DNA of 64,000 nt, taken from positions 62,001-126,000 of the forward strand of contig CDMY01000238.1 in NCBI GenBank assembly GCA_001179505.1, read 5' to 3'. This document shows, piece after piece, positions 4,948 to 10,720 of the stretch (positions are counted from its first letter, which is position 1; every line of letters begins with the position of its first letter). This stretch comes from Vitrella brassicaformis CCMP3155. Taxonomy: Eukaryota; Protista; Chromerida. Below the pieces are notes generated by a model. It made no database searches and was not told the origin of the DNA. It was given only the letters and a program-made list of their open reading frames with translations. The translations under genes were made by a program, and so were the position numbers.

Positions 4948-5825
4948 ACACGGCAGCCGTGAGCATGAGCAGCACTTTCTTTGTCAATTCGTACACACGA
5001 GGGAGGGAGGGATGCAGGGAGAGAGGAAACATACATACGTATCGCACACAAAACGCTTCATAAGTAGTCCCAGCAGTGTTTTTGGGTTTTGGCCTGTAGC
5101 GAAACGAGCGACGAGATGCACAGATCCTAGCATTGCGCACGATTGACTCATGGCAGGCGCCACATTTTCTCATGTGTACGTGGGTGGGTGCGGGTGTGTT
5201 GTAAGTATTTCATGAAGTTCATGCGAGAGAGGACGGCGTGGCGCGAGGAAAGGAATGGCATTGGCTTTTACGTCACTCGATGCTACCTGTACACAGCACG
5301 CGTACACACACACATGACTCAACCGTGGCAATGGCTCTGTACACGTCTGTATGCGTATGCGGTGCGTTCGTTTAGTCAAACACACGTGTGGCACGTGTGA
5401 GTGAGTTTTTGTCTTTTTGTGAGTACACGTACACAGGAAGGATTGAAGCACTAAGGTGTGCGTGGAAAAGGCCATGCGAGAGAGCGGACGAGGACAGACA
5501 GACAGATGAGGACAAGCACGTATCGATCTGAGTGCGATACATCAGAGGGGCAGTGCAGCAGAGCAGCGAATTAAGAGTAACGAGGCGGACATGCAGTGCA
5601 GTCTGTGCTGCGGGGAATGCCGAACACTGAAGAGGATTTGCGTACAATGAATTCGATCCATCAAGCGCGCGGTCGGAAGAGGAATAGCCGAAAAGGGACA
5701 GGGAAACTTTCCGACGAACAGCCGAAAGGGACAGGAAAACTATCACATGAAGGGCACATGTAGATGGGTGAGTGTCCACACGCCGGGAATCGCCAACGAT
5801 CCGTGCAGGCGATTCGTTGGCGTAG

Positions 5826-8800
5826 ATGGACCCTTCGGCGCCTGAAAGCAACAGGACGGAGCGACCGGACGTCAGGCATCTCTCCGATCTATCGCGCCTG
5901 CCCCGAAATGAGAAGGTCTGTGTACCCTCACAGAGAAGTTCCATCTATCACCTGCCTCTGTTTTCATTTCGTTTGTGTCTGTCAGGTGACGTTTTCAGCC
6001 GTCGTTTGGGAGGTGTCAGCATGCCCACTGGACCCAAACAGCGCACGTAAGCATCAGTGTGTCCAACAAAGACGTGCTCACACTCGGGATGATCCATTCA
6101 TGTGCGGGTGTGTATACAGCCTGTGTGAGGGTCTGGTTGGTGGATCAGAGTTTTGCCCCTGACAGAGCAACAAGGCCGTCGGTGGCCCTCAAGGTGCGCT
6201 GGACGGTGGATGCACACACCCGTATATGCACCACCTGGTGCTGTGTGCTGCGTGGCAGCTACCTGTCGACATTCCCATGATGGCGGCTGGTGATATCCTC
6301 CATGTCGATGGGGCAACGGTAAGCAGGCCTGCCACCACACGCAGGCGCTCTCTCTGCACATGACATGTGCATGATGTAGGTCGACCCCAAGACCGTCATG
6401 ACGACCACCATCGTGCCCTCTGGCGACACATCTGCGTACGTCTGGCCGTCCTCTTTGCCCGAGCCCCCTTCACACGAGAACGCCACCTATGTGCTCGGGC
6501 CGAGCGGTGCGGTGGACGCTAGGATGGCGACACAACTGTGGGCGTGGGTGCAGACTTGGGGGAAGAGGCCGGCTGGCGGCAACGGGCAGACAGACATGAT
6601 TGGAGAGGTGAGCACATACAAACCACTTATGTACGGCCATCAGACCACCTTGTGGATTTGTTGCAGGTGGAGGATGTCAGTCTGTCGCCGTGCTTTCGAG
6701 TGAAGCTGTCGGCTGCTGACCAGACCCATGACGTGTGGGTGCTGTCTGAGGCACTGGGCTACCACCTGAAGAAGGCAAGACCACAGCAGACGGAAGACCC
6801 CCCACACACATTTGTCGCACTTCAGGGTGTAGAGGTCGGTGATATCCTTCATCTCAGTCGTCTAGAGCACATGCCTGGCGGCACAGGTACGATCCCCAGA
6901 CAGCAAATCATGCCTGCACACGCGACGCTTGTTGTCTCCATCCCAGGCTACATGTACACGACGTCGTCGTCCGCCGTCACCCGTCTGCCTGCCACCCACG
7001 CCGCTCGGCGCTCCACCTCTCCCCCGACAACCATCGCCCCCAGCTCCTTGGCAACCATCCCCGATCCATCTGTGTCGCCACGGAAGCCACCCGCAGCACC
7101 ACACATGCCCCCTGCCAGCAACGCAGCAGACAAGCCAGCAGACGTAACGGTGCGAGCGGTTGCATTGCCGACGACGGCTCTATCTGGATTCCCTTTAAAG
7201 GTCGCGCAGGCAGGTCGTGCCGTGGCAGCGGGCAAGGCTGACGGGGTAAGGGCTGTGGGCAGGGGGACGCCGATCGGCAGCAAGGGAGATGTGTCGGACT
7301 CATCAGACGGTGACCAAAAAGTGGATCGGACAAGGTGACCACATGACACACACACAGTGCACGTTCACGAAAATACACAAAGCTCCATCTGCACCCCTCT
7401 GTCTGTGTGTGGGTGCGCTTAGTCGCCCTGCCAACATCCGCTCGGTGTCAGCCACACCGACGCCGACGCCGACGCCGACGCCCACGCCCGTGATCGGCGA
7501 CCATCCATCACTGGTTACGGCCTGCCTGCACGTGCAGGACGGCGCCAACCGGGAGGGCCTCGGCGTGTGCAAGAAGTGTTACAACAAGGTAGGTAGGTCG
7601 GGGGATACCATACATACCGAGACACACCACTCACTCGATCGAACCATCCACAGTACAAGGACTGGGTGTGGGCGGAAGGGCGGCTGTCCGAGCGGCTCAT
7701 CGATGCCTTCAACAAGGGAGGGGACCTCGGGTTGGTCTTCTCCGAGTACGTCTTCCCATCCCCCAACAAGGTAAGCAACCGTGCCACGGCCGCAGCACAC
7801 GTGATGCACAATATCATGTGTGTGTGTGGTTGTGGGTGTGGCCAGTGCATCCCGCTTGCAGCCTTGGCAGAAATCAGGACAGGCAAGCTGACGCCCAAGC
7901 TGACCAAGAAACTCGTCAACGGCCGCAACGGCGGCCTGGACGAGATCGACGTCACCTGGTTCGTACTGAGGCAGATCCAGGTAGGTGCCCTCCTCCCCCT
8001 CCCCGTCCCCGCAACACAACACCCAATGCATGTGGGGATCGGGGTTGTGTTGCAGGAGCGGTATCAGCTCCCAGAAGGTCGCAAGACAGCGGTGTTCGAG
8101 CTGCCCACCAACATGACCGACGAGCCGCCGTCAGTCATCCGCAACAGAATGCCGCTGCCGGCGAATGACGACCAACCAGAGAACGAAGTCCCCCGGCAGA
8201 GGCGTCGCGCCCGCACACCAGCACCAGCACCCAACACGCTCACCAGTGCGGCCCCACCACAACAGAACAACTCATCAGAGGCAGCATTTGACGCCCCCGT
8301 GGCCCCCTTTGTCAGCAACGGGGCCCAACAGGGGGGTGATGGTGGCCTGATGGCCATGGCAGATGACGCAGAGGTACGTAGGACAAAAGACATGCGCAAA
8401 CGTCCTCATGTGATGGCCTTCATGTGCGCAGGTGTGCGTCAGTGTAGCAGTAGCACCAGCAGCTGGCGTGACTTTCAGCGTGGTAGGGTGGAATGTGATG
8501 TACGAGTCGACCGTGGGCACAGGGGCCACCAGCAAGCGCCGGATGGTCGTCAGAGCGATGCACAGCCACCTCCAGCCAGAGATCATGCTCATGCAGGTTT
8601 GTACGTATGTTCCACGGAGAGGAAAACATTTGTTTATGTGCCGAACATGTGTGTGTGCAGGAGGCCAGGTCCGTGTCTGAGCTGGTGGACGGCTCATATC
8701 GTATTACTGCTACAGGTCGGCGTGGTATCACACCTCTGTGTGCGAAGCCGTATGTGTGTGTATGCCTTTGTTTCAGGCGGTGTCGGCAGGGAGGATGCGG

Positions 8801-9985
8801 CCATCGCATGGGACGCCCGGCGTGTGACGCTGACGCCGATCCCGATAGATGGCGACATCTGGACGGTAGGCATCCACACACAGAGAACCCAGACATGGAC
8901 ATGATGGACATGATGTGTGTGCTGCACATGACGGTTGTGTGCAGGATGCGCTGAGTGCTCTAAAGGCCAGCGAGGCCTTCAACCGCGACTTCCGCATCCC
9001 AAAGAGGTACGTGTGCATTTGTGGGAAGGCACAGAGGCACGTGTGTGAGTGTGTATGCCTATGCAGGCAAGATGCGGAGGCCTTCATTGACGGCCTGCTG
9101 GCGGGTGGCGGCGCTGACCGACACAGACTGTGTGTTGGCCTCGTCACTGCAGAGGTGCAGTCACACATACTTATGGCCCTATGTGCGTGTGTCGATCTGT
9201 GTATGTGTGTGTGCCTATGAATGCAGGAGTCGCTTAGGTGTCTGGTGGCGTCATTCCACAACTACCACTGGCGAAGAGAGAACGAAACAGCATTCAACGC
9301 CATGACGGTACGACTGCACTGCAGAATTGTGTCTGTGCGCACAGAGGGACGGGCACTTTGTCTGTCCGCACACAGGTGGTTTTGGAGTTCCTGCGCATAG
9401 CGAGAGAGAGCGTTGCCGACGGCAGATACCCAATCCTGCTCCGTAAGTGCACACCATTCAACACAGATACGAATCCTTCTGGAGATTCGTCTACACGTGT
9501 GTGCCTGCAGATGTGGACGCCAACATCAACTTGGCCAAGCCACCAGGCCGTGATCCCCTGCAGCATCCGCCCATGGACCAGACACCATGGAAACTCCACA
9601 CGTATCAGGTATGCCCCCGCATGCCGTATACGCTTCATATCTGTGCTTGCGTGTCTACAAATGCCTTCATGCAATGCAGCCGTCTGCGCGCCGATTGTCC
9701 AAGTCGTGCATCGACTACTTCCTCTCCCTCAACCCGACTGCTGAGCGTGGTGGCTGTGTCATTGACGTGAAGGACGTGACGGCTGTCGACCTGAAGGAAT
9801 GCATCATGAACGAGAGTGTGGTGCCTCCCGCAGCTTTGCAGGTGATGAGAGACCAGGTGGCGCTCTCATCGCGGTCCAAGGATGGGTCCACTGTTGACTT
9901 TTCGAGAGAGGCTCTTAGCGAGACGCTAGATCACGACCCCATTAGGTGTACTGTCGTGTTGTCTGAGCGGCCGCCTACGGCATGA
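5826..9985 (+). CDS. POT1/TEBP-alpha-like tandem OB-fold protein fused to an EEP (exonuclease/endonuclease/phosphatase) domain
   Basis: OB1: VTFSAVVWEV...VRVWLVDQS...LPVDIPMMAAGDILHV...VDARMATQLWAW. OB2: DMIGEVEDV...VEVGDILHLSRL. A Pro/Ser linker follows. EEP motifs: VVGWNV, QPEIMLMQE, VASFHN, ILLHVDAN, SCIDYFL, LDHDPIR. Exons from 6380 to the stop at 9985 splice in phase; one junction (6318/6380) does not reconcile. Confidence 0.65.
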
Positions 9986-10181
9986 ATGTGGATAGGGAGG
10001 GATGCGTGAGAGGTGTCTGCAGTTGTGACGCAATGAGTTGCTTGCACGGAAACAAACCGGGATTTCACAAGTGCACTGCTGTCACACATCATCGTGCAAC
10101 CTGCCTTGTCCTGAACTCGCGTACATCGTGTTTGTCATGTGTCCTTGTGTGTGTGTGTGTGTGTGTGTGTGTCTTGCGCAG

Positions 10182-10720
10182 ACGGTGGTAGAGGGCAGCA
10201 CGGTGGCCAGGGTGTACGAGATGTTCATCTGCCAGTGGGTCGGGACGCCCAACAAACGGCTTCGGCTGCTCTACCGGTATGCACATTCACCCCCAGCCCC
10301 CTCCACCTATCGCTAGCCTAATCTCACTCTCTACTTGTGTGTTCTCCGTTTAGCGCCACACGCGATGGCCCGACGTACGGCGATCTCCTTCGGTGCGTGG
10401 GCAGCACCAAGGGCCTGGTCTTCGTCGTGCGCAAGAACCAGTACATCTTCGGCGCCTACATCAGCGAGGGCATCAAGTTGCCGGATGCTCCGATGCTCTA
10501 CAGCAGGTACGAGTGCGGCGGGTAGCAATTCTGCCTCAGCGGCAACTTTGACACGCCGACCAAGATAACCATTTCTCGACCGTACCTCGAGAGGTTGCCC
10601 GGAGGGACGGGGCAGCGGAGATTTGTGGGAACATCAGTATCAGGGGGCATATCTGTTCGCGCACCTGTGCCTGGGCCATGCCGAGACAGACATGGGTTTT
10701 TGTGCCGACATGCGCTGCTG
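10182..10720 (+). pseudogene. Decayed TLDc-domain gene
   Basis: RLRLLYR|ATRDGPTYGDLLRCVGSTKGLVFVVRKNQYIFGAYISEGIKLPD is TLDc-like. In-frame TAG at 10523-10525 is followed by QFCLSGNFDTPTKITI; later family-like pieces (EVARRDG..., HLCLG...ADMRCC) lie in different frames. Confidence 0.7.

Follow-up and report, generated by a model that had tools for sequence, protein, structure and literature searches.

The chromerid alga Vitrella brassicaformis, a free-living relative of apicomplexan parasites, encodes a 938-aa protein in which an apparently complete EEP-type nuclease/phosphodiesterase domain stands at the C-terminus, behind a long modular front. The gene lies at 5826..9985 on the forward strand of the window, the 64,000-nucleotide stretch of contig CDMY01000238.1 that was analysed here, and it is one intact expressed gene, neither a pseudogene nor two genes. 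To explain this layout we propose that the front consists of nucleic-acid-binding modules and tethers the EEP domain so that the protein acts on DNA ends or gaps, a reading to which we give somewhat better than even chances. In this scheme a Mg2+-dependent EEP phosphodiesterase/nuclease (aa 603-938) would be connected through two long disordered linkers to a beta-rich front of ~245 aa, a zinc knuckle with four ligands and a short HhH-like helical region. These front modules would bind nucleic acid, most likely single-stranded-type DNA or single-/double-strand junctions, and keep the EEP domain close to DNA ends or gaps, so that it could cut or trim phosphodiester-linked groups there. Enzymatic activity of the EEP domain, nucleic-acid binding by the front end, a nuclear location and a DNA substrate are all parts of this proposal that we infer.

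The gene model is drawn from the sequence together with spliced RNA-derived contigs. Its 21 exons, all on the forward strand, are found at 5826-5915, 5986-6046, 6120-6193, 6259-6318, 6380-6607, 6667-6774 and 6826-6886 (exons 1-7), at 6947-7334, 7423-7588, 7654-7770, 7846-7980, 8056-8373, 8432-8596 and 8661-8715 (exons 8-14) and at 8777-8865, 8945-9006, 9067-9154, 9227-9307, 9376-9442, 9511-9608 and 9680-9985 (exons 15-21). They make up 2,817 nt of coding sequence, 938 codons and a stop, in which every junction is in phase. Translation starts at the ATG at 5826, which has an in-frame TAG upstream, and the stop codon is at 9983-9985. The 20 introns are 51-88 nt long; 19 are GT-AG and one is GC-AG. 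The 5' leader seen in RNA-derived contigs (5675..5825, +) contains upstream ATGs at 5747, 5758 and 5764, which open short frames only (32, 1 and 51 codons, respectively).

A public spliced contig of 2,996 nt spans 5675-10013 with all introns removed. Since this is a single contig and its length equals that of the exon model, the N-terminal and nuclease parts are carried by one mRNA in one open frame, as the original prediction had supposed. Further RNA-derived contigs cover the 5' third (from a second study) and the 3' half (from a third run), and their junctions are identical. The prediction had also suspected a phase break at 6318/6380; what lies there is a normal phase-0 GT-AG intron of 61 nt, and two runs, each belonging to a separate study, show it removed. 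Its claim that the exons splice in phase from the second OB to the stop holds for the entire model, with one correction: it had overlooked the GC-AG intron at 6775..6825 (+; GCAAGA...CTTCAG), which is 51 nt long, in frame and stop-free. This intron is absent from the spliced RNA-derived contig, where the joint reads 6772>6824 and the placement of the cut can move by 3. Its removal takes 17 aa out of the putative second OB.

The C-terminal part, aa 603-938, is apparently an EEP-type domain with its catalytic positions complete. It is encoded by nine exons (8432..9982, +), and its motifs follow one another in canonical order: GWNV with N623 (8492-8494), LMQ|E with E658 (8661-8663), SFHN with H766 (9257-9259), VDAN with D807 (9516-9518) and N809 (9522-9524), CIDY with D849 (9713-9715), and LDHD with D921 (9929-9931) and H922 (9932-9934), all on the + strand. 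E658 is the first codon of its exon, so that the QE motif is created by splicing. The N, E, H, D/N, D and DH positions listed beforehand were thus all found, and they were scored with a self-built profile of ordered blocks, applied exon by exon with no block crossing exon ends. In this test, whose blocks were selected after the earlier motif list had been seen, the domain reached 51.2 bits as against 29.9 +/- 5.1 in shuffles, a score matched by 3 of 20,000 shuffles and by none of 569 decoys. For calibration, divergent true EEPs from outside the profile scored 37-55 bits. The blocks coincide with the motifs of the earlier list, and two of them adjoin exon ends as splicing predicts. The ordered-block test took the place of the best single local match per exon to the EEP profile, which did no better than shuffles.

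By alignment, motif 3 is of the His type (SFHN) found in CCR4, DNase I, TDP2 and sphingomyelinase, whereas APE1/ExoIII types have Tyr/Asn; in the G-D-x-N motif, V stands where G is usual, and the domain is interrupted by two insertions, one of about 40 aa and one of about 50 aa. None of the EEP exons matched Pfam (PF03372 and its clan) at E<=10, and the locus was unflagged in a six-frame genome search. A blank from Pfam is expected, because the domain is split over nine exons of 18-101 aa. The last exon found no credible relative, and no self match, among 1.84 billion representative proteins (phmmer), and gave no usable match in the ESM Atlas. Four repeat proteins with many short phmmer matches to this exon were judged spurious, and a phage-like contig from a metagenome scan with the same exon was rejected as chance, being a seeded 8-mer match only.

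Upstream of the EEP domain, the middle of the protein alternates between linkers and small putative modules. Linker 1 (6991..7522, +; ~aa 246-390, containing the intron 7335-7422) is rich in Ala, Pro, Ser and Thr and includes a (TP)n run. It is followed by a four-ligand Cys/His knuckle, C391-x-H393-x12-C406-x2-C409 (7523..7579, +), which has no Pfam family match when searched exon-wise. The middle helical region comes next (7654..7980, +; exons 10-11 with the intron 7771-7845). Here, within exon 7846-7980, the stretch GKLTPKLTKKLVNGR at 7882-7926 (+) provides a weak lead toward a helix-hairpin-helix-like motif. Against a local ComEA-type HHH_3 profile this exon scores 4.9-5.2 bits, the highest among the 21 exons, and its score was equalled by 9 of 5,000 shuffles (p about 0.002); Pfam itself gave no match to the exon. 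Single-sequence AlphaFold, run on the read-through middle region, returned a helix-loop-helix at low confidence (pLDDT 40.1), and aa 381-520 had no family match in exon-wise searches of Pfam and PDB. Linker 2, which by composition is Ala/Pro-rich, occupies exon 12 (8056..8373, +; aa 497-602). It carries a basic cluster, RQRRRAR (8194-8214), possibly serving as a nuclear localisation signal; neither a signal-peptide-like start nor transmembrane features are visible in the translation.

The N-terminal ~245 aa are proposed to be beta-rich and may form two OB folds, each a five-strand barrel. The first of these, with the helix that follows it, would take up aa 1-171 (5826..6607, +; exons 1-5) and contains LVDQS at aa 57, LP..GDILHV (GDILHV at 86) and ATQLWAW at 145. 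The putative second OB (6596..6990, +; ~aa 167-245) reads DMIGEV...CFRVKL...GDILHL...GYMYTT, with DMIGEV at aa 167 and GDILHL at 212. In fact, all the strings originally quoted from the N-terminus, the C-x-H...C-x2-C segment and the EEP domain are present in the sequence. When 6667-7000 was modelled by single-sequence AlphaFold, with its two in-frame introns translated along, the result was a low-confidence structure (pLDDT 37.7) made of strands only. An internal-repeat test of the two putative OBs found a common block of 5 residues, GDILH, which the second OB shares with exon 4 (p=0.005), and no significance for the remaining exon pairs.

Could this front be a true POT1/TEBP-alpha OB pair that sits on the (TTTAGGG)n G-strand overhang and makes the protein a telomere-end-directed nuclease/phosphodiesterase? 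We consider this the most serious alternative, possible yet well short of probable. Its attraction lies in the three short motifs LVDQS, LP..GDILHV and ATQLWAW, whose order and spacing would be those of OB1 and the adjoining linker helix in human POT1. In addition, (TTTAGGG)n is the telomere repeat of the Vitrella genome, found at contig ends, and a PF02765 search of the whole genome showed no alternative POT1 candidate, with 0 matches there and none in the control genomes either, which makes this blank uninformative. Against it, none of the tools used (exon-wise Pfam, PF02765, PDB, Atlas) gave a POT1 match that would bear out the motif-by-motif alignment originally described, LP....GD(I/V) ahead of a strand is common to many OB folds, and OB2 of POT1 is much longer than the second OB would be here. 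The N-terminal exons, searched one by one, matched nothing in Pfam, PDB or the Atlas and no paralogue; exon 5 had 0 matches to PDB by phmmer, and in the ESM Atlas it reached thioester-domain clusters at 0.87, below a meaningful level. More broadly, 17 exon translations submitted singly to Pfam at E<=10 returned nothing, and a PDB sequence search with three pieces returned nothing besides one weak Dps match (E=1.4).

The boldest form of the telomere reading, that Vitrella's sole POT1-type module shares one polypeptide with an intact EEP nuclease, with HhH-like and zinc modules in between, so that the (TTTAGGG)n overhang would be recognised and processed jointly, we regard as slightly less probable still. 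In a variant, the protein could be the lineage's POT1, with a nuclease replacing the TPP1-binding half. The literature searched contained no paper connecting Vitrella with POT1, none that spells out the POT1 motif strings, and no description of a fusion of POT1-type end recognition with EEP end processing. The architecture had originally been put forward as undescribed; this stands insofar as no such fusion was found, but EEP domains tethered to DNA-binding modules as such are known (EEPD1, APE2, TDP2).

Instead of DNA, the substrate might be RNA, the protein being a 3' exoribonuclease (deadenylase) of the CCR4/Nocturnin/PDE12 kind with an RNA-binding OB, S1 or cold-shock-like front. OB-type folds frequently bind RNA, and the motif 3 His is shared with the CCR4/DNase I/TDP2/sphingomyelinase group. 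We find this unlikely: no deadenylase family matched in the exon-wise searches, and DNA is what the HhH-like motif and zinc knuckle would suggest. Less likely again is a front unrelated to nucleic acids, joined to an EEP domain whose substrate is a lipid, an inositol phosphate or protein-linked. The EEP superfamily, whose fold is a four-layer alpha/beta sandwich, does take in sphingomyelinases and inositol 5-phosphatases, and exon-wise searches found no family for the front end; yet the translation offers neither transmembrane nor signal features, and the basic cluster, zinc knuckle and HhH-like motif better suit a nuclear DNA protein.

The gene is single-copy: queries with six of its pieces against its own genome recovered this one locus and, besides it, nothing but (TP)n matches of low complexity, which are noise. 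The Vitrella genome contains many retroelement-type EEP open frames; neither these copies nor any paralogue matched the searched pieces. A decaying or mis-joined gene, be it a pseudogene, two genes (both originally foreseen as refuting outcomes) or a retroelement endonuclease remnant, as the abundance of such frames and the suspected phase break might have suggested, is hardly credible given one 938-codon frame on a single spliced contig, 20 of 20 introns spliced in phase and exons that match no retroelement copy or paralogue.

Should the weak HhH lead prove right, the closest known architecture would be that of EEPD1. EEPD1 consists of two (HhH)2 domains and an EEP domain (PMC12988330, PMC4684289), and a 2026 structural study describes it as mostly metazoan and not found in 'lower eukaryotes', with key catalytic residues lost in Metazoa, where it clamps DNA rather than cutting it, and with an unusually long beta11-beta12 loop (PMC12988330). 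Both proteins would place N-terminal modules first, then unstructured linkers, then the EEP domain, DNA binding being known for the modules of EEPD1 and presumed for those of Vitrella, among them a possible HhH motif of the middle region. The Vitrella protein also has a long insertion between its last two EEP motifs, a possible counterpart of the long loop of EEPD1. Unlike metazoan EEPD1, it keeps all catalytic positions; it has at most one weak HhH, and carries ~245 extra beta-rich residues and the zinc knuckle upstream. The sequence gave no match to EEPD1. A tryptophan-handshake dimer interface in the EEP domain is a further mark of EEPD1.

The comparison with POT1/TEBP-alpha (PF02765) is limited to the N-terminus, where both would have two small tandem beta-rich modules, the second being far shorter in Vitrella than POT1 OB2. 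The C-terminal, partner-binding half of POT1 is OB3 with an inserted domain; in its place the Vitrella protein has a linker, the zinc knuckle, the helical region and EEP. APE2 joins an EEP nuclease to a C-terminal Zf-GRF finger that binds single-stranded DNA, and TDP2 joins a UBA to EEP. We propose a similar logic here, in which an accessory module leads an EEP phosphodiesterase to single-stranded DNA or damaged ends. The accessory modules differ, however, no sequence similarity was detected, and motif 3 is of the His type rather than the APE type.

To our knowledge, the end-binding proteins of chromerid and apicomplexan lineages are poorly known. Should the front bind single-stranded or telomeric DNA, nature would have joined a reader of DNA ends to an active EEP nuclease in one protein, and DNA binding by the front end would offer a direct handle on chromosome-end or single-stranded-gap processing in these lineages. 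Were the HhH lead borne out, the protein would count as an EEPD1 counterpart from outside Metazoa with its catalytic residues preserved; with neither the DNA-binding nor the HhH reading correct, it would be an EEP enzyme particular to its lineage whose N-terminus is an orphan. EEP folds that act on telomeric repeat DNA do exist, as in the endonuclease of TRAS1, a telomere-specific LINE, and they show that this fold is able to work at telomeres. Unlike such LINE endonucleases, which are retroelement domains lacking OB folds, the Vitrella gene is spliced, single-copy and cellular.

The gene at 5826-9985 lies on the + strand and was modelled from positions 5400-10400, translated in three frames. 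It opens with an ATG at 5826, immediately after an in-frame TAG, closes with a stop codon at 9983-9985, and comprises 21 exons with 2,817 coding bases (938 codons plus the stop). All junctions of its 20 introns (51-88 nt each, 19 GT-AG and one GC-AG) are in phase, which extends to the whole model the earlier claim that the exons from OB2 to the stop splice in phase. The phase break once suspected at 6318/6380 is absent: this junction is an ordinary 61-nt GT-AG intron in phase 0. The GC-AG intron at 6775-6825 (51 nt, in-frame, GCAAGA...CTTCAG), which had been overlooked, is missing from the X8 contig described below, and its excision takes 17 residues out of the putative second OB. This intron is also stop-free, and two protein isoforms are possible via its retention, which would add 17 residues within that OB. 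The 151-nt leader contains three upstream ATGs within 5747-5825, opening 32, 1 and 51 codons only; two of these have short frames that overlap or pass the main start. Such upstream open reading frames suggest translational control.

At the RNA level we compared the model with contigs from four public sequencing runs, placed on positions 5600-10100; contigs of X8, X7 and X1 match it. A single 2,996-nt X8 contig spans 5675-10013 with the introns removed. The exon model predicts exactly this length, so every one of the 20 modelled junctions holds, among them five not individually listed. X7, from a second study, covers the first four junctions and reaches about 400 nt farther upstream, while X1, from a third, covers junction 8373/8432 and the last five. 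Because introns are absent and splice ends canonical, these contigs are hard to explain other than as RNA-derived, although the runs are not recorded as RNA. A spliced X8 contig and an open, in-phase model thus refute both "two genes" and "pseudogene" outcomes in favour of a single transcript from an intact gene. Short bits of unrelated contigs in runs X1, X6, X7 and X8 also fall on intron or low-complexity sequence at 6332-6367, 7988-8010 and 8784-8801, and are probably dispersed simple sequence.

The C-terminal part (aa 603-938) very probably has an EEP fold. Local alignment of whole exons to our EEP profile, built from 23 domains (20 PF03372 matches in Deinococcota genomes and three from Vitrella), had no power. 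We therefore sought the best ordered placement of the eight most conserved profile blocks, the canonical catalytic motifs, on nine exon translations, confining blocks within exons with none across exon ends. The gene scored 51.2 bits against 29.9 +/- 5.1 for within-exon shuffles, a value reached by 3 of 20,000 shuffles and by none of 569 natural-like decoys (maximum 41.2), with blocks picked knowing the originally proposed motifs and two of them divided at exon ends. A first version, with one block unsplit, gave 41.7 versus 21.9 +/- 5.2 (reached by 1 of 2,000 shuffles). For calibration, leave-one-out profile members scored 43-100 bits and divergent retroelement EEPs outside the profile 37-55 on seven blocks. 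The placements are VGWNVM; PEIMLMQ at an exon's very end and EAR at the next exon's very start; ASFHNYHWR; RYPILL at an exon end and DANI where the following exon starts; then KSCIDYFLS and, last, ETLDH. Only splicing brings together the QE pair that binds metal. As had been proposed, the catalytic residues N623, E658, H766, D807, N809, D849, D921 and H922 are all present, and the predicted domain is likely to be catalytically competent. It departs from the norm in a V, instead of the usual G, before D807, and carries insertions between E658 and H766 (about 40 aa) and between D849 and D921 (about 50 aa).

Sequence searches were run exon by exon, the joined translation serving for phase, length, motif positions and composition. 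Exon-wise, Pfam returned no match for 17 translations at E<=10, PDB sequences no meaningful match and the ESM Atlas no usable lead. In a phmmer search of 1.84 billion representatives, the last exon (101 aa) did not retrieve itself; the sole matches were four repeat proteins, and hence no credible relative of this exon emerged. A metagenome scan gave one phage-like match, judged chance.

The front end is somewhat better read as an OB-type fold than otherwise; true membership of the POT1 family is doubtful. The front end does contain the strings quoted in the original prediction, in an order and at a spacing that may resemble those of OB1 and the adjoining linker helix in human POT1. No tool returned a POT1 sequence or match for the exon-wise front end, PF02765 was blank across the whole genome and likewise in the control genomes, and we found no paper printing POT1 motif strings. 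The two putative OBs have only GDILH in common (p=0.005), other exon pairs being non-significant in this internal repeat test. AlphaFold of 6667-7000, reading through two in-frame introns, gave strands only (pLDDT 37.7), too poor for a fold search.

In the middle region, C391-x-H393...C406-x2-C409 forms a four-ligand knuckle without a family match. Exon 7846-7980 includes GKLTPKLTKKLVNGR then GGLDEI, a segment that resembles a ComEA/EEPD1-type helix-hairpin-helix (HhH). When aligned to a local HHH_3 profile built from 20 bacterial sequences, it scores 4.9-5.2 bits, exactly at the hairpin-second-helix columns, top among the gene's 21 exons and reached by 9 of 5,000 shuffles. Correction for the number of exons raises the probability to about 0.04, and we therefore treat it as a lead only. 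AlphaFold of 7654-7980 places a helix-loop-helix there, but at pLDDT 40.1. EEPD1 joins two (HhH)2 domains to an EEP domain through unstructured regions; it is reported to be mostly metazoan, with lower eukaryotes lacking an orthologue, and to have lost key catalytic residues (PMC12988330). If the HhH-like motif is real, EEPD1 is the nearest described architecture.

On balance we lean towards a nuclear, nucleic-acid-tethered EEP phosphodiesterase, whose N-terminal binding modules would anchor a complete active site close to gaps or ends in DNA or to single-/double-strand junctions. A comparable tethering is seen in APE2, which acts with a single-strand-binding zinc finger of its own. EEP domains with DNA-binding modules are already known; what is new is this combination, in a protein without detectable relatives, and greater interest would follow only if the POT1 or active-EEPD1-like reading holds true. 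A telomere-specific version, a subset of the tethered phosphodiesterase, is possible but unlikely. (TTTAGGG)n arrays in telomere orientation do stand at contig ends of the Vitrella assembly G000 (72.7 Mb, 1,064 contigs), as at C20:1-233, C292:4-101, C376:7-62, C421:7-118 and C539:1-134, a 5-unit probe giving 237 matches versus none for a reversed control; some other listed arrays, such as C130:184555 and C571:265866, may be internal. An RNA 3'-end enzyme is improbable, and a substrate other than nucleic acid more so. A dead or chimeric gene, as the supposed phase break might have implied, is scarcely credible given the spliced transcript.

Six pieces of the gene matched only their own locus in the genome. 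The gene is thus present in a single copy and has no kinship with the genome's many EEP frames of retroelement type. A family of closely similar endonuclease open frames of this type (441-1,051 aa), likewise unrelated to the gene, occurs in at least seven places (loci L015, L017, L019-L022 and L024). Two full-length PF03372 genes without introns, L013 (G000:C405:1396-2151) and L014 (G000:C356:320368-321045), are also present; one is ExoIII/APE1-like, and the other's nearest fetched relative, at 28% identity, is in a Trueperaceae bacterium. Just 3' of the gene a (TG)n microsatellite lies at about 10140-10175, and beyond it, within 10140-10530, another + strand gene begins, with exon translations resembling a TLDc-type domain.
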